This document shows positions 2,812-25,868 of a stretch of 64,000 nt of DNA, one piece after another. The notes beneath the pieces were generated by a model. It did not search any database. It was given only the letters and a program-made list of their open reading frames with translations, and was not told the DNA's origin. Numbering within the stretch: position 1 is the stretch's first letter; each line of letters starts with the position of its first letter. Source of the DNA: Phallusia mammillata (Eukaryota); NCBI GenBank assembly GCA_965637545.1, contig OZ281500.1, positions 8,866,001 to 8,930,000 on the forward strand, written 5' to 3'. The translations under genes were made by a program, and so were the position numbers.

Positions 2812-5800
2812 ATGTCTGGAATCACCAAAGAGCAACAGGAAAGGATGGAAGCAAGTCGACAACGAGCTTTAGCCATCAAGGCTGCTAAATTGGCAAGTGC
2901 TGACAAACACACAAACCAACTGAACACTCTTAAAGCAAAAACTGTTGCTAAAAGTCAAAGTATTGCTAAAAGCAGTATTGCATCTCCATTTAAATGTTCT
3001 GCAATTGGAGGAAACAGGTTTTTGGTGTGCTGCGCTTACAATGCAAAGTATGTGACCATCTTCAAAAGCATATCATCCAGGCGTTTTGATCCCGAGTCAA
3101 AAGGATGGTCATTTGATATGGATGATTTTACAGCCCTTGGTAAGTTAATGTTTCAGCCAATGCATGCATACTTTGTAACACTATTGCTTTTCAGAAAATA
3201 AACTTAAAAACATTGGTCAAGTTTTGCCAAATTTGAACAATGGGGTTCTGGTAAAATCTACAGAATCAACATTGTCAACAGTTCCTTTAAATGATGTCTG
3301 TAGAGGATTGTAAGTAAAATTATCAACCTTATCTTTCTGATGTTGTTTTTTCAAATAGATAGCTGCAACTCATTTTATAAAATGATTTTTAGGTGTGTTC
3401 TAATATGTCGCCAAAGATTTGAAATTGATATTCCCTATAACAACATATGTATTGAGATGTTTAAGACTCAACCATCAAGGGAATATGATGCCAAAACACG
3501 AAGATGGAACTTTGCTTTATCAGATTATCCTAAACTTAGTACGTAGCCTTTTTGTCTCTTTTCTTATATTTGCATTCATCACAGATGACATACTAACTTG
3601 TTTTTAGTGTCTGGTCTTGCAAAAGAAGCCAGCATTTATGTTGAACCACTTTCCTCAACTGTTCTTCAAGTCTTTAAAGATCAAATGTTGGGAAAACAAG
3701 CAGAAATATCTAAACCAGAATTTGACCTTTTTGATATAGATCAGAAAATTGTGTCTTCACTGATGCCATTTCAAAAAGATGGTGTTAAGTATGAGTGTTT
3801 TGTTGTGGCATTAATAATAATAATCTAGAAACTAGTCTGAAGCCATGTTGATTAAATATTGCAGCTTTGCAATATCAAGAAATGGAAGGATTTTGTTGGC
3901 TGATGATATGGGTTTGGGCAAAACAGTTCAAAGTATCTGCATTGCAGCGTACTACATGGAAAAGTGGCCCTTACTTATTATTTGTCCTTCTTCTGTGCGA
4001 CTTATGTGGAAAGAGGTATAACGATCTCATAGAAAATAAAGATTATACTTTTTAAATGCTTTTTCACTTGTTTTTACAGGCATTGCTGAAGTGGTTGCCA
4101 AGTCAGGTTTTTGATGATGATATTCAGCTTGTCCTTACTGGCCGAGATTTTACATCAGAGGAATACAAAGTTACCATAGTTAGCTATGATCTACTGAACA
4201 AAAAGCAAAAGCAGTTTGCATCAAAACAATATGGAGTTGTTATATTGGTAAAAATTGTTTTTGAGAAATGTTTGAGCATTAATGCAAGGTCAAGAAATTG
4301 TGTTCCAAGTTCAACATCCTATTATCGTTTTGATTCTTTCTTTCTTAGGACGAATCCCACTTCATCAAGAACTTTAAAACAGCTCGAGCCAAAGCTGCTA
4401 CAGCTGTATTGAAAAACGCTCAGCACGTTTTGCTGCTGTCTGGAACACCAGCTTTATCACGACCTGCTGAACTTTACACTCAACTTTCTGTTGTGCGTCC
4501 TGATTTATTTCCATACTTTCATGATTTTGGTGTTCGGTACTGCGCAGCCAAAAAGGTAAAGTAGAAACGGAGGTTATTATTTTACTATACAGTAAACATC
4601 CTTTATAAAGTTTTGTTAAGAATATATAATGCACGTTAAAATGCATTTAAGCTAGTATTAAATGTAAGCAAACTTGTATTCTCCTTTGTGGTAAGAATAT
4701 GTAAACAACATTTCTTCCTGTTTTAGATACATCTGCTCACACAAAACCCTTTCAAAATTGCAATACCCAGTTTGGTTAAATTTGCCTTTCTTGGTTTCTA
4801 TAGAATCCCTGGGGTTGGGAATACACGGGTTCTTCGAACATGAACGAGCTTCGTCTGGTCTTGCAAGAAACGATCATGCTCCGTCGCACCAAGGAAGACG
4901 TTCTCACACAACTTCCTCCTAAACTTCGACGCTCTGTGGCATTAGATGTGGGCAAAGTGAAAACCTCGTCACAACAACAAAAAGCAATAGAAGAAGTAAA
5001 AAATGCAGTAAAACAAAAAGGATTGTCGGTGAGAATACCGTTTGATTTGACTGTGATTTCTCAACCTTTTTTCCTGTACTGCCCCTTTTACGTCAACGTA
5101 ATTAATAAACGCCCACCATAAAATTTCACGATAGACATCAAATCGATAATATTACGGATAATGAAATATTGGAGATAATCGTGTACTCCGTTTAATCCAA
5201 CGTTCGTTTATTCCGGATAATCAAATATTCCGTTCAATCGAATATTCCGGAGAATCGAATATTCTGTTGAATCGAATATTACGGTTAATCGAATATTCCG
5301 TTTATTTGAATATTCCGGATAATCGAATATTCCGTTCAATCGAATATTCCGTTTAGCCGAATATTTTGGATATTTGAAAATTCCGTTCAATCGAATATTC
5401 CGGATAATCGAATATTCCGTTTAATCGAATATTCCGTTTAATCATATTCGAATATTCCGGATAATCGAGTATTTCGTCTAATCGAATATTCCGGATAATC
5501 GAGTATTCCGGATAATCGAATATTTCGGTTGATCAAATATTCCTGATAATCAAGTATTCTGTTTAAACGAATATTCCGGTTCGATATTTGAATAGTCCGT
5601 TTAATCCAGTCTTTCTCAACCTTTTTTCCTCTACCGTCCCCTTTAGGTCTGCATAATTTATAAACGCCCCCCTTATAGCTGACAAAAATCAAAACGATTT
5701 TATTTCACGTACAATATAAATGCGATAATTTAGAGGCAACTCTTTAATCTATATTTTGGCACTTATAATAACATGCTAATGGTTAATCAACATGATATCA

Positions 5801-8800
5801 CTGCAGACAGTGCTCATTGCTTTTAACTTGGTTCCAGTGATGGGCCAAAACTGCAATTGTTTGGTCGAGCATCTTATTTTAACGCTTGGTGCCCGGTCGA
5901 ACACGCTCGGTGTATTGTGACGGTCACACACCTTTACACGGTGGTTTTTACTTATTTTAAGGCCCCTTTCTAGCCCTTCTGCGTAGCATATGACTGATGA
6001 GGTTAGCCGACGATAAGTGAAATAAACAGAAACTAATTGAAAGCACTTTTGAGTAAGCGTGTTCCCACTATTCGACAATTTTAAAAACAGTCACGTTTAT
6101 TCTTGGGGACCCAACTTTGGTATGTCAGCAGTGAACAAATCACACGTTGAATTGTGATGTCACCAAACCCGTTTGTGACTTGCCTGTTACACTATTGTGT
6201 AATAAGTAGGTAATCCATTCATATTTGCAGTGATTGTCTAACGCTCGGCTTAGTTACTGCGACCGAGCACAAGCCAAGCACAACTCAATTACTACCTGCA
6301 AATTTTGACCGACAAATAACGCACTGTGATTTGCACAAAATGCATTATGACATCATCGTGATCTGCTCTATCTTTTCCCAGCGCCCCCTAATCGCCCATT
6401 TATTCTGCAGCGCCCCCTTGTTGATAGCAAACGCCCCCAGGGACACGCCGGCGCCCCCGTTGAGAACTACTTGATTAGACGTTTATTTACATGTACAAGT
6501 GTGTATTGTTGTTGTAAGTGCCGTATATCATACAAATTAAGCTACTATGTTGGAAATGTATTTTCTATTTATACATTCACGTAAAAGCTCGGTAGCGCAA
6601 TAACAGTCACGAATTATAGGTTTTAGCCTATCGGTATTTAAAAAAAAACAATTAAATTTGGCCCGGGGCCCGATACAATACAATTCATATACGTTTTTGT
6701 CAGTTATAAAAAGTTATGAACGCGAAACCACTTTATTATATTATGATAGTCTAAAATACCCTCTACACTTACAGGCGCTTGAAAAGCATGGCATTCTGCT
6801 ACAATACTTCAACGAAACAGCTCATTTGAAGTTGCCAGCTGTCAAGGCGTATGTCGTGGACATGCTTGAATCTGACAGAAAATTTCTGCTCTTCGCGCAT
6901 CACAAGATGGTGCTAGACAGCATAGGTCAAGACCTAGACAAAAAGGTATGACCTCAAGTACCTGTATTAATTTACTGTAATGGTCATCTAAATCTGTTAA
7001 CTGTTTTTGGTTTGTGTGTGTTCTACTTAGAAATGCGAATACATACGTATTGACGGCAACACTCCTTCCGAACGGCGCCAAAGGGAAGTTACAAGATTCC
7101 AGGAAAAGTCGTGCTGCAAGGTGGCGCTCCTGAGTATCACAGCTGCAAACATGGGAATTACCCTGAACGCAGCGTCCCTTGTTATTTTTGCCGAGTTATT
7201 TTGGAATCCTGGGGTACGCAACGTTTATTGTGGCTACGTGTCGTTTACTTCTTTGTTGTGCCACTATGTACATGCAGTGTTGCTTTTTGTGTGGTTGTTG
7301 AAGATGATAATCTGCTTCCACAGTAAGTAGTAGCTATGCAGTTCTCCAGCAATTAAGCAAACCACCTTTTTTAAAATATTTGTTTGTTTGAAAACCAGTC
7401 AATATGTAGCTTTTGAAAAGTTGATATAACGTGCCTATTGAGGTCCAAATCGCTGTATGTGTCAAATCATTAACCATGGCTTTATCACAAAGGGTCTAAC
7501 GATTGAGTCATAACATCAACACAAAGTTGCCTATTTTTCTCTCTCATAGATCCTGGTTCAGGCGGAGGATCGGTGTTACCGCATCGGACAACGAGACGTG
7601 GTTAACGTTCATTATCTTGTTGCGAAGGGAACGGCGGATGACTACATTTGGCAGGTGCTGGCGGTGAATCATGCAAATGTTTTTGCCCGCGGTGAAAACT
7701 ATGTGTTAAAACACTTTAGCCTAAGTCGATACACCACCCGATGAATAATCATGTACAAAATATAATGTTACCTAGATAACTTTTGTCAAAACTATCCGTA
7801 CGTCTTTTGTATCATTTTGGCTTCGTTTGTAAAAATGCAAGTGGTTTGAAGAATTATGTAGGCACACATGTAATTTTGTTAATAAACAAATGCACACCAT
7901 AAAAGGCAGCCAAAGCTTGAAGTGTAGGTAACTAGGACATCTTTATCTTTTATAGACAGAAATCAACATATAAATTTACACTGTTTTATTATGCAGATGG
8001 TCAAAGACAAACTGGAAGTGTTGGGCAAAGCCGGTCTCAACAAAACCAACTTTGAAGACGCAGAAAGCCACGTGGCGAAAGTTCCCAAGCAAAATGACCT
8101 TCTCAACTATTTCCAAGTACGGCTCGCGTAATCGAAAAACTAAATTTGCCAAATCTGGTGATTTCCGAATTTGCGTTACAAATGATGCACAGGAAATCGA
8201 CTATGTGATGGAAAATTAGTTTCAAGAAATGTCATGCGTTGTAGTCTTGTCGAAGCGCTTTTATGATCACAATCACAAAAAATCTGTTGGACTCCATTTT
8301 TAGGTATCACGTGATGCGAATGAAAATCCTGCCGAGGTTGGTGATGACGTCACAGATGAAGATCTTCTGCTTTTGGAGGCATTAGAAAAAGTTGAATCGA
8401 ATTCAGATAGGTATCGAATTTTACCCATGTTGTAACACAGAGGTTCTCAACCTTTTTCGTCTTATACATCTTTTGCGAAGACAAAATCTTGCCTTCATGG
8501 TTTACTGAAAGAAGTCATGTCTTAGGGAATGTCAATCTCATATTCTTATAGTTACATCCAAGAAATATTTACCCTTCTCCGGTGTAACACGTGAAATACG
8601 ATTTTACCCTTTCATTAGCCTGCAAAAGTGATTCTCAAACGCGGCTCAGGGCCACATGCGGCTCCCAACTACTTATTTTGCGACTCGCACCAGACCTCAG
8701 AAAACCACCAAAGATTGCTATTTTAGCTTTCAAGGAAATTATCTTTAGTGATTTTCTGAGGTCTCGTTTTTTTTGCGGCTTCTTACAGACTTAAAGAACT

Positions 8801-9460: not shown

Positions 9461-12400
9461 TCATCCAAGAAACGCACAACGTCCTTGATAACACCGGTTG
9501 TTCGTGACCCGCGTTCTAAACCCTCCAATGCAATTCCTCTGGTTCGGTTTGCACCATATCCGTTCGATAAAGCGACAATACGTTTGGTCGCAATGCGTGT
9601 GTACTATGTCGCTTTCACATGGCCCCTTGCAGTCGTCAGTTTCAATTTCACTGCCATCTTGACACGGAAGGTGGCTAACCTGGAAACACCGCCTGTGCCT
9701 TGTTTTGGTTCCATCTTTTCTGCATTCCGCGCTGCAAGCCGTCCACGCCCCCCAATTAGAGTATAATGGACAAACTCCGGAATTACAGGGTTTTGATTCC
9801 TCTGCATTCCCGGGACATTTTCCTGGACCACCCGGGCAAGTACGAATTCTCTTCTGTTCACCGCCGCCGCACGACTTACTGCATTCGCCCCACGGTGACC
9901 ATGTTACCCAGCCAGTGCACGATTGTGTGTTGCAGAATTGACTCTCTTCGTCAATCGACGCGCAGCTGCCACCAACACAGCGTCGTTGCCTTGTGCTGGT
10001 GCCGTTACCACACGAAAACGTGCACGGACCCCATGATCCCCACCCGGCCAGATAGGAAGCAACCCCAGATCGTATCGTACCGGAGAGTTCTTCTTTGGGG
10101 ATGTAGCACAATGGTTTATCGCAACAAGTCTCATAGCTACCCTTCAAAACAGGAAAAAAAGTCCATTGAAAAGGAAGGTACGGACATGGTAGGACTATAG
10201 GCGGCGGAATTTGGAGCTGCAAGGGACTGTTAAAGAAATTTAATAGTAAGGCTGATGTTGCAAAGCCCGAACCGCTTAAACTGGCAGTAATCGACGCAAG
10301 GTTGGCCCCAGGTGGAAGTTCATCGTCGCCTCCAGTATTCGGAAGGTTTCCGCTTCTTCCTGATACTTCACTGGCATTGGTGCCTAGATCTGGGTACACT
10401 CCATTGCCCGTGTATCTTGGACCACTTGCAGCTTGAAACAAACCAAACCGTCTTCCCACTGGTTCGGAAGCCGCCTCGGGTGCTGGGGTGGTATGGTCCG
10501 AAAGGTTGAAAGCAAACGGCACAACCCTTATCCTGGCACCTTCCGGGAGGTTGAGCTGACTGCCAAGGGGAAACACGGCACCAAAAAACTTCTCAGTTAG
10601 ATTACGTTTATCAGCAATTACCTCGTCCGCTAACTTTTTCCAGTTATCGGCGCGGACTTGGCCAGATTTCACCATTTTCCAAAAGTGAAACTGTAAATGT
10701 AGAGGAAGATAGGAAAATACAGTGTTTATGATTTCTTTCTGGACGCGACTACCAGCAACACCAACGGCACAACCTGCTGATAAACATGAGTTGTATTGAT
10801 CAAGAAAGTATTCTGCAGCAGAATCGTCTTTCAGTTCTTGGCACTTGGGCTGCCCTGATGGCAAAAAGATTTCTGGGATATCTGTCTTATTGTCGTTTAG
10901 AGATCTCGTTGTTGTGATTTCTGTATCCATTGGGTACACACATATGTTGTTTCGCCAACATCCGTCGATTAGGTAGCAATCCGTTTCGTTGATGCCTAGA
11001 CAGCAATAACTCGCTTTTATATACTGTTTCAACTAACTTATGTTTTACGATGAAGAATAGTGTTTGGAAACTTATGAAAAAAAACCTAAACCCCTAAAGT
11101 CAATTTTAAGTACATTTTGAAACCATACTTGTAAACTAGTACAAGAAATGTTTCTAAAACCAAAAAATAATGAAATACCCTTAAAACATATATATTGGTA
11201 AATATAATCAGCGGTTAAATTACAGACAAAAAAACCTGGATCAAGTAAAAGATAGCAACAAATATATTTTGGGTGTTTTTAATTATAGCCCACGTATTCA
11301 AGTTCTTACTTGGCCATCCTGCCAGTTTTGGTTTGATACCAAAATGTTCCAGGACATTGATCATGTAACATCCAGGTCTGTTAGCCATCGTCTCATTACG
11401 GAATTCTTTAAGCACGCACTTCGCCAGCGACGGTGCCCAAGGTCCATGCTGTGCAAGTTTTGTTTTTGTCAGAAAATTTAATTTGACAGTCTTTTTACTA
11501 CAGGAAACAGTAAAAACTTGTTGCCATCAAATTTGGTGTTTTATATCGCCGTTATCAGAAGGTTTTACATCCTATTTTCATGCTCCCTCAAACATGTTGC
11601 AAATATTTCAGCACATTTTTTCGAACTAAACTAAAGTCTAAACCGGTGCTGGGACGGTATCAACCTCGCGAATACATATATTTAACTTTGTCAAAAAGGT
11701 AAATGAAGGCGTCCGTTTTGGTTAGGGTCAAGAATCATTTTGTTAGTTGTTTATGGAATGTTTTTGTCCAGATTTTACACAGTAGATGTATCTTCATTAT
11801 AAAACAGGTTCGTTTACCTCAGCAATGTATTCTTGAGCCCGTTTATGAAACGCTTGGTTTCTGATGGCAAGGTGACACACAGGTACACCTGGTACGACAG
11901 CATGTCCAACCGACTCGCGATGAACAAAAAGCTCGAAGTCGAACGCGCATCCAGGATTAAGCAAACACAGTCCAAAATCGCCATCTAGAACATCATTGGT
12001 TGCAGAACAAGGAATTCTGCATTCAATAAAAGCGAAGTCACACAACAATTTTATTTTCTGTGGGAGGTAGTTTTTCAGGGGGTACTATCTTGTTTCTGTC
12101 TATTCTAGCATTGAACTATAAAGAAAACGATTAGGTATCATGATTTTTGTGCGTTTAACTTACTGAAGCCAAGGAGCGGTATTTGGAATTTTCAAAAGGA
12201 AATCTTCATTGATCAAATTACCTTTGACAGTATGGTATGTTGATAGGTGGCTCGATATCAAAAGTCGGCCCTTGCGAATTGCAGTTATCTGGATATTTGA
12301 CGCATCCGATTGGTGGTAGAGGGACAGCTGTTAAGAATAAATGTTTTTCTGCCTGAGGCTATTTGGTTACAGCATGTCGAATTAAAGGTCAGGTATGTAG

Positions 12401-13053
12401 CAACAACGTTTTCCGAAGGCAAGTTGTGGTATTGGAATTAAATTGACACCTCGACAGACACGAGATAAACTATAAACAAGTTGCTTTCCCTTTTTGTGGC
12501 GGGAACTACAACAGCAAGAGCATTAATACAATAGAACACAATCAAATAGCTTACAATTGCGGCAAATTATTGTGAATGATAGCATATTATTGTGTGTCCA
12601 TAACTTACTGAGACTGCGCTCTGCGATGCCAAGACGAGCAAAAATATCTTGTGTAGTAATTTCTGGTTTTGATGGCCTTTCTGCGGAAAAATAGGAAATC
12701 TTAAAATCTCATAGCTGCTTTACAAACTGCAGGACTAATGCCACATACTCGGTATTTTAAGTTGACACTTGTTTCTTTTCCAACAACAATGCTTGGCTTT
12801 GGCACAGTTTGCTGCTCCTTGGATGGCATCACCGGTGCAAACATTTCTGCATTGCAGGGGCGAAGCTAAACCAAAAAGCTCGTTTTATCATCAATTAGGT
12901 TTGAATGTATTAAATAAAAAACTAAAACTTACTGTCTGAACAAGTTCCTTGCGTTTCCAATAGTTTTTGTGCTGGTGATTCGCATGCCTTGCTAGCAGAC
13001 AGTATGGCAAAAAAGACTGCCGTTAAAAAACATAAACGCTCTACCGCGCTCAT
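9461..13053 (-). CDS. Secreted Cys-rich protein with trefoil-like modules and 3 thrombospondin type-1 repeats (paralog A)
   Basis: Exon 1 (ATG 13053) gives signal peptide MSAVERLCFLTAVFFAILSASKA. Internal exons give CRNVC..C..CCW..C, PINIPYCQR, PGCAFD..GVPVC and PGCYMI..PKLAGW. The large last exon carries three WxxWxxCSxxC..R.R.C TSRs. Minus-strand AATAAA at 9305-9310. Confidence 0.88.
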
Positions 13054-15186
13054 TGCTCCTATACAGTTTGGTGTAATAACCTAAGCTGTAAGCATTCGAA
13101 TAGGTTGACTTTGGCAATGGCTTGGCTCAAACTTCGTGCCGCCGGGAATGCTCAACTTCAGCTCAAACCACAGCCGCCCGCGGTGTTTTCCGGATGTATA
13201 TAAATATATGTATGTATGTACGGTGTTTAGCGACGAGGAGTCAGAACGACATTCGCATACATTCACGACTTATTTTTAGCCCCCGCGTACACAAACACCT
13301 TGTTGGAGAAATCTGTACGTGGACATGGCGGTCTACACAGTAATGTCTCATATCGTGACCAATCTTTCGACATGAATCATAGACAACAGAAGGACTTAGT
13401 GGTCACACAATAGGCCACGTACAGATAGGAGAGCCATGCTAACAGGTTTGGGCAACATCAAGGCGTAATTAAGCGGTAATTTGCATTTAAACAACAATAA
13501 AGTGCTTAAGGCATCTGTGATTCGGTGGCACGTTTGTATTGTTTGGTCACATCAATTTACACCATAACATCGTAATTTAATGCTGTCACGACATAAAAAA
13601 GTTTGAGAAACCAAATTTAGGTTGTAGGACAAAGGAGTTTCAAGTGGCCAGTACAATTACGGGTATTTTAAACAAAATGTGAAGCACTGCCACACCTCCA
13701 ACGTTTTTTGCAAGAATGCGCGAAAAGACAATGGGCGACTGCAAGTACCGGACCGGTAGCGTACAAAAACATTTTCAGAGACAAAAGTAAAAATGGCAGA
13801 AGCTGAGCAAGAAGTATCAATTCGGGATCATCCAATTGAAAAAACGGTATTTACCACGTAAAAAAGTTAAATTGAGCGACTTTGTCGAGCTAAACGACTT
13901 GACAAATCATGAAGTGGGTGCACAATTTGAGGGAAACTACCCTGAACTATTAACAGCGGAAATGGACAGTTGATTGACATCACACATGGTGTAGAATCAA
14001 CTCACGTCCCCAAAGTGATGACACCCACGTCATGAATCATTTTGTTAGTTTGTTGCGAATATGACTCAGTTTCCCAAGAAATGTTGCGCTTCGTATAACG
14101 CCATTGGCGGAAAAAGAGCATTCCAAATATGGCTATAAACAGTGACGCAGCAAGGAAACCCAAACGCTATAAAGAGTGCATTTTGAGCAGTTTTTATTGG
14201 GCCTAAATTTGCGCAGAAGTAGGCTGTGGCAATTCTGGGCCATCACTATAGTTTGAAGTGCAGCTTAAACTGTAGCATATATGGAATAAATTCAGCTTTT
14301 AAGGAGCCTCCATCAGTGTGGTCAAGGGTATATTAGGGCGTATTTGTTGTGGCAAAACTTACTTAAATATGTGAACTGATCAAAACATAGTTAGGCTTGA
14401 GCGACTACCTTACTGCCTCAGGCAAAATGCTAAATTTGTGACGTGGCTTCAAAAATGGCTGCGTGCGAATCAATACGCTTTTTTATAGGTCTCACACTTA
14501 GCTTAACATTCAACTAGACCTAGCAATTTTTAACACTTTTCTGTACGTAAACAACTGACATAACAAAAAATCAATCTTTAGCCAAGTCTTGCATGCCTAT
14601 ATGCAACAGGACAATCTAAAGTATATAACTCCGGCAGCTAGCGCAGTTGTTTTCGACTGATGCCGTAGTTTGACGATTATGGTCGCTACCGCAGCGTGCG
14701 TCCGACGACAGGTTTTTCTGCGAACCCGAAGAGTAAAATCATCGGTGATGCCTTATAACATTAGGTTATTAATGTCAAAATTCACGTTGCAATGCATACA
14801 TAGTTGGAATACATAGTCCAGTTTTGTTGTGTCAAAAATAGTTTTGCATACACCTTGTACGATGTAATCTTTAATAAGGCGAACGAATGAAGTTGTCCAC
14901 ACCATGTGTGTTCGTTCGACAATTCGCGAAACTGGCTGGCTAATTGTGTAAATGATCTGAGTACAACTAACTATGCGAGTATACAACGAGATACAAGCAA
15001 TTACTGATGAATCCTTCCAGCTACATCCTGCATTTTAACAACACAAATCGCAACGAACTGATCAATTATACACGTACGATCAGAGCCTTATAAACGACCC
15101 TCTAGTATTCGTACTGTTATTTCTGGATTGATTCAGACGATCTGAGCAATTCATTGACCTCTGGGCAGTTTTTGTTTTCAGCAACG

Positions 15187-18100
15187 ATGTTGAAAGTTTT
15201 CGCACTGACTGTGTCATGTGTGGTGATAATATTTCTTGGGTTTGTACGAAGCTTACCGTGTGACGATGCAAGACAAAATCTCGCAGTTAACGGGACTTAC
15301 AACTCAGGTGGGAACGACTTGATTAAACGACCTTTGTATGTAGAAAACAATGACTAACGAGTAAAATTGTTCACCAGCTAATTCGGGCCTTCATTGTATT
15401 GACCCCTGCGACGAATCTGGTCAAATAATTTCAACACAAATTGACTGTCAAAACCAGACGTTTTGCCACTGGAACGGAAGCTTCTGCTCATTGAAAACAG
15501 GTATTTAAAAGTTTTGACGTTTGTATTGACCAAATTAGTTTTGGTGATTTAAATGTTGTTGTTTTTGACAAAATAGTTACGACGGTGGTGCTCGACAAGA
15601 ACAGCAACCTCAGTCGGGGCTTGGCAGAAAAGCTCAAAGAAGACGATGGCGGCAGATTTGGGCCTGGTAAGTTACAGACCCCGTTACAGACTTGTAAGTT
15701 GGACCAGGTTCGTGCTTGATTCGGGCCAGACTTTATCTCGGCATCATTTTTTCCACATTTTTACCGATTGTTGGGTCGGATTGTTGTTTTTTGAAAGGGT
15801 TTATGACAGGTTTCGGGCTTGTAGGCTATTCTCGGTTTCGGGCGCCAACTTCACGCCCACTTAACTCCATTATTACTTAACTCCAGGTCCATTATTATTT
15901 GAGTTGAATTAATTAGTGTTTTACCATTATTCTGTTCGCAGGATTTAACCCACTGACTCCACCATGGTGCCTGAAATTTCCTGCTTCGTGCCAAATAGAA
16001 CCATTCGATCCCAACAATTTGCATTTGCTCGATCCCCCAGTTGATATTCCGTATTGCCAGAGGTAGGAATCTTCAATGGCACAATTATCTTCAACATCAA
16101 CAGCGCAACAACTGTTGTGTTTTTGCACAGAATACCGTGCCGTAACACCGATCCTAGTCTTGAGTTTGACGGGATTGCTTGCCACTCAGTGCCCGGGTGT
16201 TACTTCGATGTGGAGCTCTACAATCTGAGGCACTACTTCGGTCACTCAATCTTGTCAGGGGTGCCAGTTTGTCAAATGGCAATCCGGAACAGGAAGTTCC
16301 ACGAGCTGGTTAACGAGTACACAGAAAACGTGAGCATTTGTGACCAGTCCTGATGCGTTATTTGGAATTTCCTTAAAAAGACCCGTTTGTTCTTAACCGT
16401 TGTGTAGTATAAAATCATGAGAAATCACGATTGGCATTACACAAATTTAGTCGATGTTTCAAATACCATTTGTGGAAAGACAAATGCCTCTTAAAAAATC
16501 TTGGCTGAGTTTAAACCCTTTATTTTATCCTAATCGTGATTGCATGTTCATTTGTAGAAGTTGTATTTTTTGTTAAGTAACAAACACAATGTTTTTAATG
16601 ACTTCAAAATTTATGCAAAACAGGGTGCAAAACCGTGGAATGGTCTCTTTACAAATTGCTTTCTTGAAGAAAACAGAAAAAGCATTTACTCCCCTGATCC
16701 GGGTTGTTTCATGATCGATGTGCTGGAATACATGGGAGGTCAACCGAAACTGGCTGGTTGGGAAAGTAAGTCAGCCATACCAATAAAAGTGAGCCAAAAC
16801 GGTTTATGCAGCTTACTTACAAGTCTATCATTTTTTCAGATATCACTAAAACGGACTGCGACTTGATTGGAGGATGCATGAGACAAGACTGTTACGCGCC
16901 AATGAAAACTTATGCAGTAAATTTGCGTGCCGAACCGGAAGAACCGACCTATCAAGTACTTGAAAGCATTGGGGCACAGAGATGTCAAGCTCTTGACCGA
17001 TCGTCGACTCCGGAGCATTTTCTTAGCGCTTACCACCAATGCAAGCAATCAGGCTGTGTTGTGGACAGAGGCGTTGATATCGAAGTCAAACAGCATCTAT
17101 TGAATGTTACTTTGACCTACTTGCCGCCAGACCTACGCCTGTTATTTTGGTATCTTGTGCAGTCGAAAATCATCGGACCCGACAATTGGCAAAGCAAAGC
17201 TGATGAGATTATGAGAAATCCGTATGATTTCGTTGAGGTGTTCCGAAGTGTTGATTGGATGCATTTCAAAAATCGCCTTGGTCAAATCATGAATGAACGG
17301 CCTTTTGTGGACGACTCAAGAGGAGATAACACAAAACCTGAACTAACCGCTAGTGACCGATTTTTGTTGCTTCATCCCGAATTTGCTTCTGCAGAACCAT
17401 CAGACGTACCTAAACCTCCAGTGCCTATTTCTTTACTTAACTTTCCTACAGGCCCAGTGCAACCTTTCTGCCCCTTTCAGATTTTCAGCTTTCACGGTCT
17501 TTTTCCGCTTAAAGGTACCTTCGCAGGGTGTTGCAAACAGCACCTTTGCTATACGCCACGTCACCGCATATCGGGTCGAACATCAGGTGTAGCTTCATAC
17601 TGGGCCGAGTGGGGAGCCTGGGGTAAGTGTTCAGAAAAGTGTGGACCTGGAATCAGACCATCTACAAGACGTTGTGTGCGCTTCAGGGAAAGCGACACCT
17701 GCGAAGGCTTGGAGGAACGGCAGCAGGCTTGCTTTATCGAAAAATGTCCAGAATGGGCCGCATGGGGCAGCTGGGGCTCGTGCAGTAAAACATGCGGCGG
17801 TGGAATGTCGATAAGAAACCGAGAATGCGAAGAAGACGGCTGCAGAGGAGAATCGGAGGAAAGCAAAATCTGTATGACGGAAGACTGTCCGGTGTTAGGC
17901 AACTGGACGGAGTGGAGTCAATGCAATGCATCGTGCTCTTCAGGACTTCAACATCGCAGCCGTACCTGTGATGACAGCCAGACGACTCTCTCCTGCCCCC
18001 TGCCGGAAGCTCTTGCAGAGGTTCGAGTTTGTGACGACTTTTGCGGCAGTATTGTGGAAAAGAGCAAGTCAAAGTGCCAGGGTTTTCCCACCTGTGCGAT

Positions 18101-18254
18101 CGTTCGTAAATATGAGTGCAAGATGAAAACCTCACGTGGTTACGTCGACGGTCACTGTGAAAACTTTAAAGCCGAGAGAAAACAACGATGCTTTGGAAGT
18201 TTCCGATGCCGACTTTGTCGTTGGTGGAACGATTGCGATGAAGTCGATATGTAA
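15187..18254 (+). CDS. Secreted Cys-rich trefoil-like/3xTSP1 protein (paralog B)
   Basis: Signal peptide MLKVFALTVSCVVIIFLGFVRS; same exon series as A (PVDIPYCQR, PGCYFD..GVPVC, PGCFMI..PKLAGW); last exon with three TSRs; TATAAA about 100 nt upstream of the ATG. Confidence 0.9.
15675..15870. repeat. Degenerate dispersed repeat (copy 1 of 3)
   Basis: GCTTGATTCGGGCC core and TCGGG-rich motifs shared with ~45540-45745 and ~47985-48200. Confidence 0.5.
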
Positions 18255-18654
18255 TTAATGTATACAGTAAAAAAATATGTTATGTTTGCTTTCAAAATAA
18301 ATCACGTTATTACCGTATTTGATTCTGCGTGCAATTGAAGTTATAGATGAAAAAAAAATATAGGCTATAATCAGGCAAGCTCCAGCAGGCTAAAACACTT
18401 TCAATACCCCGCTTGTAGGCTATTTACCTTTTAGAACACATTTAAATACAAAACACATTGTTTATAATCTAAACACATTACATGAGGACACCAGCCCTAT
18501 TAAAGGCGTGATACCGAATCAAGCCCGTCTCCCAAGCAATTCACGAATGTATTCACCTTAGCACATTACATAAGGAGTTTAACCTAAAACAACGCTATGG
18601 CAAAACACGAGTCATATGCTCTAGTAGCAAAAGACACTACTTCAGCCAACATCC

Positions 18655-18875
18655 GACGTCACACCGTTTTCAAACACAGGTAAATCGCAAACAGATTTTT
18701 ATTGAACCCACGTGACATCGGACAAGTGACGCAATTAAAGTGGCAAGGCAGGGCAGTTTAGCGCTATAAATAGTGGCGAATGCAAAAGGGTGGTGTCGTT
18801 GACGCGACAATTAGTGCTTGTTTCGCTTTCTAAAACAAATGCATGCAGGGCCTGTGACGTAAGTTGTTGTGACGC
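18655..18875 (+). promoter_or_regulatory. Putative promoter of paralog C: TATA box plus clustered TGACG (CRE/ATF-type) half-sites
   Basis: TATAAA at 18765-18770; TGACG or its complement at 18657, 18727, 18800, 18855 and 18870. Confidence 0.45.
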
Positions 18876-19157
18876 AGTTGCCATAGGTGGCGTCTGCCCT
18901 CAGGGATGGGTGTCGAAGTAAATGTTTTTGACCCGAATACAATATATACGGGTGTCGGCCGTCAACGGTCATCATATTCGCTTGTTATTGCGAAGGATAA
19001 CTACAAGCAAACAGGTAAATGTATTTATGTGTGGTGACATGTAAATAAGTTACATGTTAATGCAAAACGTGTGATATTTGACTAGGTTTAGTGTGGCAAA
19101 ATTTATTTAGTGATCTCGCATTGGACAAATCTAATTTATTTATTTTTTAGATTCAAA

Positions 19158-22100
19158 ATGAAATTTCTTGTTTGTGCACTGACCATATTATTGCTGAAAA
19201 CTGCAGTGAAGGGCGATGGAGGTAAGAAACCAGACAATTTAGTAGCATGTTTGCGCTGACATATAAAGCCATGAAAAAAAAGATAATAGACACTATTGCA
19301 CTAAAGTAACTTGAATCGCTTATCTCGAAAAAGCTACATAAAAAAACATTTTTGCAGACTGCCGGGCGAACGCGAAGAGCCTCGCAGCTTCAGGCGAAAA
19401 GCATGACAGTAAGCATAAAGTTTTACAATAGCTGGTTTTTTATTACATTTATCAACAACATGTTTTTTAGATATAGTTGAGTGCATGGACGACCCTTGTA
19501 ACGCGAGCTCCGCGGTGATCAGGGACCTCGCGTCCTGCCCTAACCACTGCTTTATCCACAAAGGAAACTGCAACCTGAAAATGCGTAAGTGCACATTCCT
19601 TTTCGCACACTATAGGTGCAATTAAAACGACTGTTGCTAATATACAGAACTTTCAATTTCAATTTAGGTGTTAACTAATGCGGCACTTTGTTTTCAGTGC
19701 CACTACCTAGTGAGGAGGGCCCAGGTGTGGATGCAAGACTATTTGGTAAGCTTAAAATGCTTGCGCAAAAGTTGTATGATAAGTTTAGGAAACTCTAACA
19801 AATATTTTAAAGGTACTGGAAACCCGTTTCCAAACAACGGCTTGTTGCCACCAGGCTTGCTACCACCGTTTGGCCCCAACACACAGTGCCCGACTTTTCC
19901 CAACAACTGTGGTCTCAGCCCATTCAGCTTGGATTGGAACAGCTTGACAATTCCGCCCGTAAATATTCCCTACTGCCAAAGGTAATTTTATTCTGACGAT
20001 TCCACAAATACATCTCAAAAGCAGTTTATTTTGAATCGCTTTGTCTACTCTACAATTAAGTGTATAATCCCGTACTGCAGGCAGCAGGTACCATGCGCAT
20101 TTATTGGTAATTTACTGGTCAAGTTTGGTGACATATAAACAGATAGTTACGCGTCCTTAAATTTTATTTTTTGCTTTTGAAGAATACACTGTTCGATGTC
20201 CGACCAATCATTAGAAAGTAACCCGAATGCTTGCCACGCCACACCGGGTTGTTACTTCGACCAAGAGTTGCACGCCTATCGCCTTTCGTTCGGATACGCT
20301 ACACTGCCGGGTGTTCCTGTTTGCCACAAAGTTGTACGCAATGCCAGATTTCACACCCTTGTCAACAAATATCTACAAACGGTAATTTTTGCCCCCTTTG
20401 GTAGGCTATTGGATTTTTTTGCCCCAGATGTTAAGTGTTTATTGGCTTGCAGAGCAATCAACAGTGGAATATCGCCTTTACAAACTGCATGATTCAGCAA
20501 AATCTGGAAGAGATTCATGAGCAACCAGCTGGTTGTTACATGGTTTCAGCCTTTCTTTACATGGGGATTCGACCAAAAGTTGCTGGATGGCGGGGTAAGA
20601 CAACTGATATTTATTAGCTTTGGGAGATATTATCTGACCCTCAATATGGTTGCATATAAAATTGGAATTTAGAAAAACAATATAATACCATTCCGTAACA
20701 CTAATCAAGTTTTAGCACCACGATATGCGTAAATCTTTTTTTAACTAAAAACAAAAACCTATGTGACCAAGCTATAATGTGTTGAAGCAAGCCACAGTAC
20801 TGACACTAGTGCCAGGCGAATAACAACGAATGAGAAGTCAATCTACTTTTACAGGTATCAGTAAAACCGAATGTTCGTTGATCGGCGCCTGCTTTGACCA
20901 AACCCTGGGTTGCTTTTACCCATCAGAAGTGAACCAAGTTACTGTGCGTTCTGGAGATGATCCCGAAAGAAGAATGATTCCGTCAAATGGCAACACCTTT
21001 GGTCAACCACTATGCCAACCATTAGACATCAACTGGCCGGCCGCGAAATTTCTCGACGCTTACCACAGCTGTCGTCAATCGGGCTGTGTTGTCGATCCCA
21101 TTATCAATGAAGGCGTGATTAAAGAGAACCTGTACAATATTACAATGACAATGGTTCCTCAGCACCTCCGCTACAGATTTTGGACGAAAGTGCAGCAAAA
21201 TCAGATCTCGGCCGACAACTGGCGTTACGAGTTGAACAAAATGAAACGCCAGTACCCAAATGCGAGCCCTCTGTCCCAGTTAACCTCCAATCCGATGAAC
21301 TTACTAGCCTTTACGCTTGCATTGCAAAACAACCAGAATTCTAATACAGCGGGAAGATCATTTACGCCCGATCAAGGTTCAAATGCAAATAGCGGGGAAC
21401 AGTCAAGACTCGGCTTGAGATTTCCGGGCAATCCAAACCCCTTTTCACCAAACTTCGGTGGTTTTCCTAATCCTCCAAGCTATCCTAACATGGGCACCGG
21501 GTTTCCGATGCGACCATATACAAACCCATTTTCGCCGTTTCAGCCATTTCCCGGTACTGGCTTCCAACCTCAATGTCCATTTTACAATCTCGGCTACAGC
21601 GGTTTTCCCCAACTAACAGGAAGTTTCGAAGGTTGCTGTGAAAGAAACCTGTGTTACATCCCGCGTAATCAAATTGTCTTGCAACGCTCTGGCGTATCTC
21701 CTTACCTGTCCGTTTGGGAAACTTGGAGCAAGTGCTCAAAGTCTTGCGGGGGCGGAGTTCGTACCAGAACCAGACGATGTGTCGCATACAAACGGACCGA
21801 CAACTGTCCTGACGAAAATCAAGAGGAAACGGAGTCTTGTGGTAACGAACCTTGCCCTTTTTTCACACCCTGGGGTCTGTGGGCAAGCTGTAGTGAATCG
21901 TGCGGAAACAATGGTGTCGAAATTCGCGAGCGCGTGTGTCAACCCAATGGTCAGGGATGCGCCGGAAAACAGAGAGAAGACAGACCTTGCAAACGAGGTG
22001 CCTGTCCTACCTTAACCCAATGGTCCGGATTTAGCCGCTGTGACGTGAAATGCGGTGTAGGGTCAAAGCAACGTATGCGAGAGTGCATATCCAGCAACGC

Positions 22101-22308
22101 GTTTTCGTGTGAAGGCGTCAGCGAACCGCTGGTGGAATCGAAACAGTGTGAAGTGTTCTGTGGCAAGCCGGTGCGAATCTCCAGTAGTCCTTGCGACATG
22201 TACACCTGCACTAGCACCGAGACCTGGGTTTGCGAGTATAACGGAGGCACTCCGCATTGTGCAGATTTTAGTCCGACTAGAGTGGTAAATTGCTGCTTTG
22301 GAAAATAA
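19158..22308 (+). CDS. Secreted Cys-rich trefoil-like/3xTSP1 protein (paralog C)
   Basis: Signal peptide MKFLVCALTILLLKTAVKG; same exon series (PVNIPYCQR, PGCYFD..GVPVC, AGCYMV..PKVAGW); P/G/F/N-rich linker; three TSRs; AATAAA at 22389. Confidence 0.9.
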
Positions 22309-22744: not shown

Positions 22745-25402
22745 TTAACTTCCCTCTTCCTCCTCAACTATGGTCTTTTGTGACACATAGATACCATCCA
22801 AAAACTTGCGGATGTCCTTGTTCTTTACGGTTGTGGACTGCTGGATGAGCGCAGCTAAAATACACATTAGGAAATTTAAGAAATATTTATAATTTTTTTA
22901 TACATTTCCCCACAAAACCAAAAATGCAGGTTTAAGGGTATTCATGAAATGAAATATACAGTTTAGGTGAGTTTGTTGAAAATGTTTTTCAAAACATGTG
23001 CAATAAATTTATTTCCAAAATATGTTTTCAATCGAAAGGTTATGTATGTCGATTTAGTCAAGAAGTGCAAGTTGCATTGTGTGACCTCAGACTGACGTAC
23101 AAATGCTCATCATTTGATCAGAGTGAGCTGAGTTAATCATCATGGATCACACATATAGTTTTGATTTGGAAAAAAATGATGTACACTATTGTGTGGGGGA
23201 AAAATTGATTTGTAAGACCTTGTCTTAAATTCACAACAACATAGTTCAATATTTTGCAATTAAATAATAACCACAAACCTGAGAGGGAAACTTGTTCAAT
23301 GTCATTTCCTTGCAAAATGAGCTCATCCTTTTGTTTTGGGGAGGCAGACACGACCACACCTTCCTTCATGTTCACTCGCCTGACAAACTTCTCACCGAGG
23401 AAATTCCTAATCTCAATTTTAGTTCCTTCATCAGTGATGTTACAGTTGATGGGAAAATGAGCATAAACTGATCTCATTTTGTATTTGTATCCCTAAAAAT
23501 GGAGAAAAGTCAATTTAATTTGAAAAGAACAAAAAAGGTCAACAAAATTGTTTTATGTAGAAGTTTGTTACTTAAGCCTTAAAAAAGACAAAACACTAAC
23601 TAGAAGGGTGGCTCAGCACATATTGCCATTGCACATACACTACATACACTTTATTTAATAGGTCCCATATCAGCCACTGTCTTTTATAGCCTTAGTTGTT
23701 TCTGCAAGCAGAAACTCATGGGTCCCCCACACATGCAAAGTTGTAAATAATGCATTTTGCAAAAAAAAAACTATGATAAATTTTGGTGCTATCTGTTTAA
23801 ACAGGGCGATAAAAAAGTCTGCAGACACAATCATGCTATATGAGGTACAAACTATTCAAGTCACATTCAATTCGGCAATTGTTTGCAAAATTTAACCATT
23901 GCAGGGGTTAATGGGGTAAATGGTGGGACTGCAGAGCAAAACTCAACAATCAACACCTCAAAATAGAATATTATAAAAAATTTCTAAATTTCATGACATT
24001 GTTTAAAAAGTTAACCCTTTTCAAGGGGCTAGTGGGGTACTGATCGGACTACAGGGTAAAACGTCAAATTCGACACCTAAAAATGCCATATTGCACAAAC
24101 TGTCAAAATTTCATGCAAGTTGGCCAATGTTTAGAAATTACACCCATTTAGGGGTTACTGGGGTGAAGGTGGGGCTCACAGGGTAAAAGAGATCAATGGA
24201 TGATGTATTTTATAAACTGTCAAAATTTCATCCAATTCAGACATTGTTTAAGAAATTCACTCATTTTAGGGGGCCAGTGGCATTAATCTTGGGGATGCAG
24301 TGTGAAAAACTACAATTAACACCTAATTATGGCAAAATGAACAAACTGTCAAAATTTCATCCCATTCAGGCATTGTTTAAAAATCACCCTTTTTGGGAGG
24401 CTGGTGGGGTAAATATTGGGGCTGCAGGGTGAAACACAATAATCAACACCTAATTATGACACAAAGAACAAACTGTCAAAATTTCATCCAATTCGGACAT
24501 TGTTTAAAATTTTACACATTTTAGGGGGCTGGTGGGGTAAATATTGGGGCTACAGGGTGAAACACAACAATCGAGGCCTTAAAATGGCAAAATGAACAAA
24601 CTGACCAAATTTCATCCAATTCGGACATTGTTTAAAATTTTACCCATTTTAGGGGGCTAACGGGGTAAATATTGGGGCTATCGAGTCAAACAAACCAAAA
24701 GGCACATCTACATAACCATATCTTCCATCTGTGAAAGTTTCATCCAAATCCAACAAAGATTTGTTGCCAAAAGTGCATGGACAAACTTCACGACGGAAAA
24801 AAGAAAAGAAAAAAACATAGTGAAATCAAGATGCATCCCCTTCAGGGAAGGGGACCCATAATTACTCAAAATGACCGATAGATGAAAAACAGGAAAGTGG
24901 TGTACAAGACAAATGACATTGTTGGATCACAAATTTGTTCATATGAATGACAACCAACACAACATACTCAAAATCTCAAAATTGCTGCAAAGGCTGGTTG
25001 AGCAGAAACTCCATGTTGTAAATACTTTTCTTTACATCATTTTTCTTAGCGCTCAATTACTATAAAACACTAGTACAGACAGTATCATACCTTTGTGACA
25101 CCAGTAGCCATGTTTTTAATATGACTGCAAATTGTACGCACACATGACAGGTCCTTGCGTGTTCCAAACCATTTGTCCACCCTGACACTGTTCTTGCCGA
25201 CCTTTGTCAGCTCGACCTAAAACAGAATTATACGGTAAATAAACTATGTTAGCTAATCTGATATAAAGCAACTTACTTTGAGATGGCCAAAGTTTTTTAC
25301 AAGACGACCCCTTGGTCCTCTGACGGTGACAATGCGCCCTTTTACCCAGACACTCACGTTATCTGGAAGCGTAACAACTTCATTCGAGTGAATGTTCTTC
25401 AT
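22745..25402 (-). CDS. RPL9: 60S ribosomal protein L9 (uL6); coding exons 25277-25402, 25091-25216, 23281-23493, 22745-22854
   Basis: [87 protein letters not shown]; all junctions GT-AG and in frame. Confidence 0.98.
23081..23150 (-). ncRNA. Box C/D snoRNA, SNORD29/snR71-like (copy 1, last RPL9 intron)
   Basis: Box C ATGATGA, D' CTGA, C' ATGATGA, D CTGA, terminal stem GTGATC/GGTCAC. D' guide AACTCAGCTCAC is complementary to conserved LSU rRNA GUGAGCUGGGUU. Confidence 0.88.
23599..24862 (+). mobile_element. Helentron-associated/DINE-1-like non-autonomous element with an internal ~120-bp tandem array, in RPL9 intron
   Basis: Starts ACTAGAAGGGTGGCTCAGCACATATTG and ends with the hairpin TCCCCTTC-AGG-GAAGGGGA (24836-24854) then CCCATAATT. 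About 6 units of 116-129 bp (AAACTGTCAAAATTTCAT). A second copy lies at 43549-44796. Confidence 0.7.
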
Positions 25403-25496
25403 GGTGGCGCTCACCTACAAAAAATCCATTGCTGTCTTTAATTGTTGTACATTTACAATGAAGAATGTGGTTTTGACTTGCAACACAACGGCTGAT

Positions 25497-25566
25497 TGAG
25501 CTCAGATATGTATTGTTCATCACTCATGAAGTTCTCAGAGTGAGCTGAGTAATATCATCACAGATC
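25497..25566 (-). ncRNA. Box C/D snoRNA, SNORD29/snR71-like (copy 2, first RPL9 intron)
   Basis: Box C GTGATGA, the same D' guide ACTCAGCTCACT+CTGA, C' GTGATGA, D CTGA. Confidence 0.85.
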
Positions 25567-25868
25567 ATCAAAAAAATCAAATTAGCCGACATTGATTGTT
25601 AAACTAAGGTTAGAACTGCTTTGTGGGTTACAATGCCGTGTAATATGAATTCGGGCCCTATGACCAACATATAATAGCAACAGAATGTAAAAGCCCTAGA
25701 ATAAGTCGTGTTGGTTATCGAACATAAATGCCCATGATAACATACCAAACGTGGAAAGTTACGTACCAACCTGTTACTAAAGCCATGCCACTTAATTTAC
25801 TGTAACTTTTAACCCTATTTCTTCAATTACAACGATGATTTACTCAGATCTTTCTCAAAACAACTTAC

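Follow-up and report, generated by a model that had tools for sequence, protein, structure and literature searches.

Analysis of a 64,000-nucleotide stretch of the Phallusia mammillata genome (positions 8,866,001 to 8,930,000 of contig OZ281500.1, assembly GCA_965637545.1; here called the window, whose first nucleotide is position 1) revealed three paralogous genes. Gene A is located on the minus strand (9461..13053) and is oriented divergently from gene B (15187..18254), which is followed on the same plus strand by gene C (19158..22308). This layout, proposed in an earlier note on the same DNA, was confirmed by pairwise tblastx comparison. The summed E-values of 1.9e-78 (A-B), 3.8e-68 (A-C) and 8.8e-101 (B-C) show a similarity far above chance expectation. 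Each gene comprises six exons, all introns are of the GT-AG type, and the intron phases (1,1,2,0,1) are common to all three. The open reading frames are intact and encode 738 (A), 706 (B) and 699 (C) amino acids. The gene models match depositor-spliced homologs from end to end; for example, residues 13 to 704 of B align with residues 10 to 767 of Clavelina P0005 with 38% identity. The joined exon models were used for local frame checks, BLAST against fetched proteins and alignment, and the searches and fold predictions were performed with single exons or with depositor-spliced homologs as proxies.

The deduced proteins share one domain order: signal peptide, cysteine-rich head of about 330 residues, low-complexity linker, CC-containing module, three TSP1 repeats and cysteine-rich tail. 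A hydrophobic N-terminal leader was detected in A, B and C, and no further hydrophobic segment of 19 residues was found in them. The head has no Pfam model. It is probably a disulfide-stapled unit in which three degenerate modules derived from the trefoil (P-type) fold alternate with helices. These candidate modules lie in exon 2 (T0), at the end of exon 3 together with exon 4 (T1, containing block 1) and across the junction of exons 5 and 6 (T2, containing block 2). The linker is variable and of low complexity and is probably mucin-like in part. Three motifs are conserved family-wide: IPYCQR at the end of exon 3, C..PGC.FD...GVPVC in exon 4, and AGW/I..T.C.LI..C....C.YP, in which the slash marks the exon 5/6 junction. 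The shared signal peptide, the IPYCQR motif and both blocks quoted in the earlier note are thus all present.

Exon 1 carries the start codon and the signal peptide in gene A (12933..13053; ATG at 13053, hydrophobic leader, GT donor, phase 1), gene B (15187..15307) and gene C (19158..19221). Exon 2 encodes T0. In gene A (12749..12865; AG/GT borders, phase 1/1), this module has six cysteines including an HCCW pair and was compared with bona fide trefoil repeats in family alignment A8, and in genes B (15378..15500) and C (19471..19584) a single cysteine stands in place of the CC pair. Exon 3 ends with IPYCQR, the putative start of T1, in gene A (12222..12327, which also encodes a C..FP..C segment), gene B (15942..16062) and gene C (19855..19981; the acceptor is ambiguous, as 19813, 19789 and 19711 would keep the phase as well). 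Block 1 is encoded by exon 4 of gene A (11818..12016, T1 with an inserted helix and then a further helix, the fold evidence coming from the model of B exon 4), gene B (16131..16329, folded directly with AF2) and gene C (20183..20381). Exon 5 is predicted to be helical, contains two cysteines and ends with AGW, the first part of T2, in gene A (11310..11448), gene B (16624..16765) and gene C (20453..20594). Exon 6 encodes the remainder of T2, block 3 with helices, the linker, the CC-containing pre-TSP1 module, the three TSP1 repeats and the cysteine-rich tail up to the stop codon. It spans 9461..10995 in gene A (repeats at about 9608-10060), 16840..18254 in gene B (about 17589-18041) and 20855..22308 in gene C (about 21700-22161), where the linker is rich in Pro, Asn, Phe and Gly. 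The repeats were assigned by Pfam TSP_1, and the three exons were compared in alignment A1.

The three genes are present as described, but they are not the whole set, as at least 12 copies of the family were found in the P. mammillata genome. Further members occur in Ciona, Clavelina and Styela, all named "uncharacterized protein" except for one Ciona member that NCBI names "SCO-spondin-like". Among the named database matches, the family was restricted to tunicates. Together with the leaders and the copy number, this distribution bears out the proposal of a lineage-expanded family of secreted type. In Ciona, a three-gene cluster of the family (AP043580.1, 2.60-2.64 Mb) is located between the same neighbors, an SNF2/HARP helicase gene and RPL9. 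A and B each cluster with orthologs from other ascidian orders, which indicates that both have been retained since before the split of those orders. It is very improbable that any of A, B and C is a silent or decaying duplicate of a birth-and-death cluster, even though no database protein is 50% or more identical to any of them, duplication in the family is lineage specific and at least one copy elsewhere has an in-frame TGA. Such decay is opposed by the intact reading frames of about 700 codons in six exons with canonical splice sites, by the retention of all invariant family cysteines in A, B and C, by the clustering of A and B with orthologs of other orders and by the cluster position kept in Ciona.

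Pfam analysis assigned TSP_1 to the last exon of each gene, in three stretches each, with 70.8 (A), 77.5 (B) and 72.9 bits (C) against a cutoff of 21.6, so that the three repeats per protein proposed earlier were recovered. The WxxW and CxxS/TCG motifs of TSP1 repeats are present. No Pfam model other than TSP1 was found in A, B, C and their homologs. Three canonical TSP_1 repeats are what the proteins have in common with the TSR superfamily (properdin, SCO-spondin, ADAMTS-like proteins and thrombospondins), whereas EGF, type 3 repeat, LDLa, VWD and protease domains are absent here. Thrombospondin proper (THBS1-5) was rejected as an identity, as the EGF-like domains, the type 3 calcium-binding repeats and the C-terminal lectin-like domain are all missing according to Pfam, and SCO-spondin was rejected since its other domains are missing.

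The Pfam Trefoil check (PF00088) was negative: no exon of the window matched at an E-value of 1 or below, and the best family member reached 16.9 bits against the gathering threshold of 21. This member, Clavelina P0018 (E-value, 0.0058), has cysteines at both equivalents of trefoil C2 and C4 in block 2. In a set of 31 distinct sequences, cysteine occupies both positions together, as in P0018, or neither of them, and never just one. T2 of the window genes lacks C2 and C4 and has AGW and GGC where trefoils have CGW and GCC. The invariant non-cysteine residues of block 2 are G and W. A search of 1.84 billion proteins with the exon 6 profile (A1) revealed ten matches, at profile positions 1-23, in one pipefish protein with 10 Pfam Trefoil domains; its E-value of 2.5e-7 sums ten weak repeat matches. 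That HMMER search also gave E-values of about 1e-4 for P0073 and P0071, two translated simple repeats that were discarded as junk. Comparison of the block 2 profile (A4) with the PDB sequences revealed TFF2 (E-value, 2.4e-5) and TFF1 (about 0.09), and five of the six matches were trefoil proteins. Alignment of T2 with trefoil repeats by hhalign gave a probability of 68% and an E-value of 4.8e-5. The fold evidence for block 2 comes from an AF2 model of the head of a homolog (pLDDT, 85.9; pTM, 0.60), not from the joined sequences of A, B or C. In this model, residues 123 to 177 matched TFF3 best, with Z 4.9 and 48 of 53 residues aligned.

For T1, the evidence comes from predicted structures. When the whole head model of the homolog was compared with 48,161 chains, the top match was the N-terminal trefoil domain of acid alpha-glucosidase (GAA; Z 5.0; rmsd, 2.1; 46 residues; 26% identity), and the aligned stretch runs from the IPYCQR motif through block 1. 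The AF2 model of B exon 4 (pLDDT, 94.9; pTM, 0.76) matched only four of the 48,161 chains at Z 2 or above, and the top three were the trefoil domains of GAA, ntMGAM and MGAM (Z 2.8 to 2.5; rmsd, about 2.0; 37 to 38 residues). A shape search of the ESM Atlas placed a Trefoil cluster in row 1, matching model residues 52 to 185. At the sequence level, the block 1 profile had no match in the PDB sequences at an E-value of 10 or below, and hhalign comparison of block 1 with trefoil repeats and with block 2 was not significant. T1 has a single cysteine at the trefoil CC position and a helical insert of roughly 12 residues; the lack of the CC pair noted earlier for the blocks was thus confirmed in T1 and, as GGC, in T2. 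The invariant non-cysteine residues of block 1 are P, G, D, L, R and P. The GH31 trefoil domains of GAA and maltase-glucoamylase, the best structural matches of the T1 models, share with T1 a long stretch from the (C)C position to the last cysteine. The GH31 enzymes differ from the family in that their trefoil domains keep the full six cysteines, and the proteins studied here have no glycosidase domain and no significant sequence match to these enzymes.

The small N-terminal cysteine module was present in all three proteins as claimed, but its separation from the trefoil blocks did not hold, since T0 itself is trefoil-like. Alignment with trefoil repeats by hhalign gave E-values of 8.7e-5 and 1.1e-4, the latter for family alignment A8 with a probability of 56%. 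T0 of gene A retains the CC pair among its six cysteines, with a C1-C2 spacing of 3, and B and C have one cysteine at the CC position. No match of the exon 2 modules to Pfam Trefoil was found at an E-value of 10 or below. The best subthreshold Pfam match of T0 was TMEM190, with E-values of 0.011 and 0.035 for two family members at profile positions 15-54. TMEM190 is a sperm membrane protein described as a trefoil-domain protein; it differs from the family in being small, membrane-bound and without TSP1 repeats. A search of the PDB sequences with the exon 2 module profile yielded a nonsignificant VSG match and nothing else.

Trefoil domains have the disulfide connectivity 1-5, 2-4, 3-6, for which the joint presence or absence of the C2 and C4 equivalents in the 31 sequences gives indirect support here. 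The modules share the cysteine register of PF00088 (TFF1-3 and the Xenopus and fish multi-trefoil mucus proteins), C-G-aromatic ... I-T...C....(C)C-aromatic ... C-aromatic-P. The predicted secondary structure also agrees, with a two-strand hairpin that comes after a short helix. Both profile and fold comparisons align T2 with TFF2, TFF1 and TFF3, and none of the six cysteines is missing from T0 of gene A. In contrast to PF00088 domains, loop 1 has 3 to 4 residues in T0 and T1, and the modules form part of a larger helical head instead of standing alone. Six canonically spaced cysteines including an adjacent CC pair were found in none of T0, T1 and T2. Among the predicted structures, helix-strand-strand arrangements were obtained at T1 and T2, and trefoil domains ranked first in VIA (Z 4.9, 5.0 and 2.8) and in the Atlas. 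All structural Z-scores are 5.0 or below, a range in which chance arrangements occur, and Foldseek against the PDB gave neither model a significant match. None of the fold searches returned PAN/apple, kringle or saposin-type folds, which had been weighed as alternatives for the head.

The presence of trefoil-derived modules in the head is thus supported by sequence evidence and by predicted structures, which are independent of each other. Of the unannotated trefoil-derived fold proposed in the earlier note, the derivation stands on profile, hhalign and predicted-structure matches, whereas Pfam Trefoil membership does not; block 3 and its subsequent helices are not trefoil-like. A lineage-specific cysteine-rich fold unrelated to trefoils, in which short C...GC.(F/W)D...C hairpin motifs have converged, appears quite unlikely. 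Such motifs are common in small disulfide-rich domains, and convergence would agree with the missed Pfam threshold, the lack of a sequence-level trefoil link for block 1, the nonsignificant Foldseek result and Z-scores of at most 5, the repeat-inflated junk matches in the HMMER search and the C1-C2 spacing of 3 to 4, compared with 9 to 10 in trefoils. However, five different searches blind to trefoils ranked trefoil proteins first or among very few matches, the cysteine register is identical in all alignments, the C2 and C4 positions covary, and three modules of one protein indicate the same fold. If the trefoil derivation is correct, trefoil modules have entered a new partnership with TSP1 repeats, and the fold can do without one disulfide, the positions of which covary. 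No papers on trefoil and TSP1 in tunicates were found.

These results suggest that A, B and C are probably old paralogs of a secreted multidomain family, so far found only in tunicates, that joins a head with three degenerate trefoil-derived modules to TSP1 repeats and would most likely function as an adaptor in the extracellular matrix or the tunic. The analysis provides a first account, at the level of domains, of proteins entered as "uncharacterized protein" in every ascidian annotation. It shows their gene structure, domain content, trefoil-like sequence and predicted fold, distribution and synteny, from which we infer that they are secreted, that the repeats are glycosylated, that ligands are bound and what the biological role may be. 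In the adaptor role, the protein would bind a glycan or glycoprotein partner through its trefoil-derived head and matrix or glycosaminoglycan partners through its TSP1 repeats, so that a single molecule could cross-link two kinds of extracellular ligand. The lectin residues of TFFs are an Asn/Asp before C2 and a Trp before C6 (PMC7221086). At the sugar-contact positions of block 2, N was found in 1 of 31 and W in 0 of 31 sequences, and in block 1 the Trp position is taken by V. Without the Asn/Asp and Trp with which TFFs bind sugar, a lectin function of the head is speculative, and its specificity would be unlike that of vertebrate TFFs. The same lack of TFF3/TFF1 sugar-contact side chains would fit a purely structural role, in which the trefoil-derived modules pack a rigid, ligand-free head and the protein acts through its TSP1 repeats and linker only, for example as a matrix filler or spacer. 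The packing of modules and helices as one predicted unit (pTM, 0.60) points in the same direction. We regard this role as possible but the less likely one: the invariant non-cysteine residues of blocks 1 and 2 suggest constraint beyond the disulfides, and trefoil domains are commonly located at glycan-handling sites, as in TFFs and GH31 enzymes.

The adaptor reading may extend to a known metamorphosis marker. Ci-META2 of Ciona (KH.C6.197; UniProt F6V1M6) is described in the published account as secreted, with three TSP1 repeats and up-regulation at metamorphosis (PMC13225635). A signal peptide and exactly three TSP1 repeats are also present in A, B and C, the likeness being one of published description and mass. 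The reported mass of Ci-META2, 85.494 kDa, is inside the family range, and the nearest member is Ciona XP_004226907.1 with a computed mass of 85.583 kDa. The name META2 was not found among the Ciona family members retrieved, and no paper naming the LOC identifiers of these members was found. A word-based protein search with residues 1 to 260 of B exon 6 had no match. The same kind of search with Ciona P0011 and with the 20-sequence family alignment A6 returned six proteins each, none of them META2, TSP1 words having swamped the candidate selection. It is doubtful, though conceivable, that Ci-META2 belongs to, or is a sister of, the cluster between the SNF2 helicase gene and RPL9 and that tunicates have invented lectin heads of new specificity, with one disulfide and the TFF sugar-binding residues lost, which link glycans of the tunic or the adhesive papillae to TSP1-bound matrix at settlement and metamorphosis. 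If so, these heads would represent a natural trefoil fold surviving on two of its three disulfides. The trefoil derivation, if correct, would provide a concrete glycan-binding hypothesis for a group of proteins to which Ci-META2, a marker never analyzed functionally, may belong. As synteny is kept with Ciona, this hypothesis is testable in an established model organism.

Six-frame comparison of the three gene regions (window 9461-22308) revealed tblastx blocks in identical order in A, B and C, with summed E-values of 1.9e-78 (A-B), 3.8e-68 (A-C) and 8.8e-101 (B-C). Exon models were built from open frames, AG/GT sites and phases. Each gene has six exons with common intron phases (1,1,2,0,1), all introns are GT-AG, and the joined open frames encode 738 (A, minus strand), 706 (B, plus strand) and 699 (C, plus strand) amino acids. 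The acceptor of C exon 3 is ambiguous (19855, 19813, 19789 or 19711, each in phase). All three proteins carry a hydrophobic leader at the N terminus, and no second 19-residue hydrophobic segment was found in them. Pfam TSP_1 matched three stretches in each last exon, at 70.8 (A), 77.5 (B) and 72.9 bits (C) against a cutoff of 21.6, and WxxW and CxxS/TCG motifs were seen in these repeats. Residues 13 to 704 of B align with residues 10 to 767 of the Clavelina family protein P0005 at 38% identity; this end-to-end alignment of spliced models with depositor-spliced homologs supports the exon models. No database counterpart of A, B or C at ≥50% identity was found. Single exons or database proteins were the inputs to searches and folding, and the joined models were used in local scripts only. 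These results bear out the earlier note, which described three paralogs with a leader and three TSP1 repeats. Since every motif that it quoted is present in A, B and C, the observation is confirmed, and the A-B-C cluster is real and intact.

A and B are positioned head to head, and about 2.1 kb (window 13054-15186) separates their start codons. This interval may hold a shared bidirectional regulatory region. A four-cysteine module (CP.. then L.G.F.GCC...CY.PR) lies directly N-terminal to the first TSP1 repeat and is kept in A1, the profile alignment of nine exon-6 heads (columns about 295-330; in B, window about 17430-17560, plus strand). The Cys-rich tail after the third repeat is also conserved in the family. 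Pfam has no model for either the four-cysteine module or the tail.

The position of the cluster is conserved in Ciona. In assembly GCA_018327825.2 (AP043580.1, 2.60-2.64 Mb), three family genes are bordered by a HARP/SNF2 helicase gene on one side and by an RPL9-type (Ribosomal_L6) gene on the other, with genes for Fringe and a formin lying beyond the latter. This arrangement recurs in the window: exons of a SMARCAL1-like HARP/SNF2 helicase (3598-8119, plus strand) with up to 92% protein identity to the Ciona flanking gene, among them an SNF2-related exon (4804-5118, plus strand); A-B-C; an L6/uL6 (RPL9) type ribosomal protein gene (22751-25589, minus strand) with its Ribosomal_L6 exon at 23136-23492 (minus strand); and the FH2 exon of a formin gene (34034-34414, minus strand). 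The middle gene of the Ciona cluster encodes XP_004226907.1, the closest Ciona member by mass to Ci-META2 (KH.C6.197, UniProt F6V1M6). The two masses are not identical: 85.494 kDa is reported for Ci-META2, and XP_004226907.1 has 85.583 kDa. Ci-META2 is described as secreted and as carrying three TSP1 repeats (PMC13225635); its expression rises at settlement and metamorphosis, and no functional analysis of it has been reported. None of the retrieved family proteins bears the name META2.

When the genome was searched with B exon 6 minus its TSP1 repeats, at least 12 family copies emerged: A, B and C, three upstream copies on the same chromosome, and a tandem array of six genes, all on a single strand, on another chromosome (G000:C5:7048626-7102493). 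Two of the upstream copies (L004/L007 and L005/L008, at G000:C7:8841255-8842118 and 8852689-8853552, about 11.4 kb apart) have identical 487-aa last-exon frames, pointing either to segmental duplication in the very recent past or to duplication in the assembly. One array member bears an in-frame TGA, and two cDNA-derived P. mammillata database proteins match array copies at 99.6% and 100% identity, which identifies the genome as that of P. mammillata or of a species very close to it. In the paralog L002 (G000:C7:8831769-8835563, minus strand), the exon 5/6 intron is open in frame, placing both exons in one 536-codon frame; a coincidence or an isoform that retains the intron could explain this.

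An HMMER search with A1 against 1.84 billion representatives gave 74 matching proteins, of which 32 had E-values below 1e-30. All named matches are ascidian (Ciona intestinalis, C. savignyi, Clavelina lepadiformis, Phallusia mammillata and Styela clava) and titled "uncharacterized protein" or "SCO-spondin-like"; the others are unnamed metagenome or metatranscriptome contigs. No non-tunicate protein with this head was found in this search. As judged from sequence, the family is multi-copy and so far seen in tunicates only, in line with the lineage expansion proposed earlier. Maximum-likelihood analysis of 28 rows covering the exon-6 portion grouped A with two Ciona cluster genes and one Clavelina gene (support 95/86), B with Clavelina LOC143467999 (99/94), and C with Ciona LOC108949537 together with the Phallusia copies that lie upstream (89/89). 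The other-chromosome array formed a Phallusia-specific clade (100/100), and two Styela proteins and one unnamed contig formed a clade (100/100) at the root, where they had been placed as outgroup. Branches are long (median terminal length, 0.86). These groupings indicate that A, B and C are old paralogs, retained since before the split of the ascidian orders, with lineage-specific expansion later.

The earlier note had also proposed a trefoil-derived N-terminal half. In T2 (block 2, exon 5/6 junction), positions 1 to 23 of A1 matched one pipefish protein with ten Pfam Trefoil domains ten times; the E-value of 2.5e-7 (whole library) is a sum over ten weak repeat matches, and this search also scored two junk repeat proteins at about 1e-4. 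Comparison of the block-2 profile (A4) with all PDB sequences gave six matches at E≤10, five of them trefoil proteins, with TFF2 best at 2.4e-5 and both TFF2 domains aligned in the expected cysteine register. Alignment of T2 with the pipefish repeats by hhalign gave a probability of 68% (E 4.8e-5). In one Clavelina member, CGW and GCCW replace the AGW and GGC of the other sequences; this member thus has the two cysteines that form the 2-4 disulfide in trefoils, and it alone scores Pfam Trefoil (E 0.0058, 16.9 bits). Among 31 distinct block-2 sequences, Cys occurs at both of these positions or at neither. The AlphaFold2 model of the Clavelina head (21-sequence alignment; pLDDT 85.9, pTM 0.60) matched human TFF3 best over residues 123 to 177 (Z 4.9, rmsd 3.0, 48 of 53 residues aligned), and among 48,161 representative chains the MGAM trefoil domain matched T2 at rank 15.

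For T1 (IPYCQR at the end of exon 3 plus block 1 in exon 4), no sequence-level link to trefoils was found. The top match of the whole Clavelina head among the same chains was the trefoil domain of human acid alpha-glucosidase (GAA), at model residues 28 to 89 (Z 5.0, rmsd 2.1, 46 residues aligned, 26% identity). The model of B exon 4 (22 sequences; pLDDT 94.9, pTM 0.76) matched only four chains at Z≥2, the top three being the trefoil domains of GAA, ntMGAM and MGAM. In an ESM Atlas shape search, row 1 was a Trefoil cluster (model residues 52 to 185). T0, the exon 2 module, which had been treated separately before, is present and is itself trefoil-like, a third module: hhalign against trefoil repeats gave E 8.7e-5, or 1.1e-4 with window exon 2 sequences added. 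T0 of gene A retains an HCCW pair. In two members, TMEM190, which has been described as containing a trefoil domain, was the Pfam model that came closest without reaching the threshold. For block 3 and its following helices (model residues 199 to 275), generic helical fragments were the only matches.

Pfam Trefoil (PF00088) did not match any window exon at E≤1. Foldseek gave no significant match for the Clavelina head or B exon 4 model, whereas the other structure searches put trefoil domains first, with all Z-scores ≤5. The folded sequences were the Clavelina head and the window's B exon 4, and the fold evidence for T2 comes from Clavelina. Given that several searches converged on trefoils without steering towards them, and with these caveats, T0, T1 and T2 are read as modules derived from trefoils that fall outside PF00088 in the formal sense. 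The trefoil proposal was substantially right in derivation and predicted fold, but not in Pfam membership or TFF-type lectin residues.

Mutation of the TFF sugar-contact residues, Asn/Asp before C2 and Trp before C6, abolishes mucin binding (PMC7221086). In block 2, the former position is N in 1 of 31 sequences and the latter is W in none; in block 1, V occupies the place of the Trp. With these residues missing, TFF-type sugar binding would not be expected. Binding of a different ligand by the head is possible, because both blocks contain invariant non-cysteine residues. From the architecture, these proteins would most likely act as secreted matrix or tunic adaptors, in which the trefoil-derived part would be the binding head and the TSP1 repeats the binding tail. 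No publication was found that describes this family or the head; its components, the trefoil-derived modules and the TSP1 repeats, are each of a known kind. Across the family, the linkers vary and are of low complexity: that of C is Pro-, Asn-, Phe- and Gly-rich, that of one upstream copy has PQPNPY-type repeats, and those of the other-chromosome copies have mucin-like Thr runs and PQYP-type repeats.
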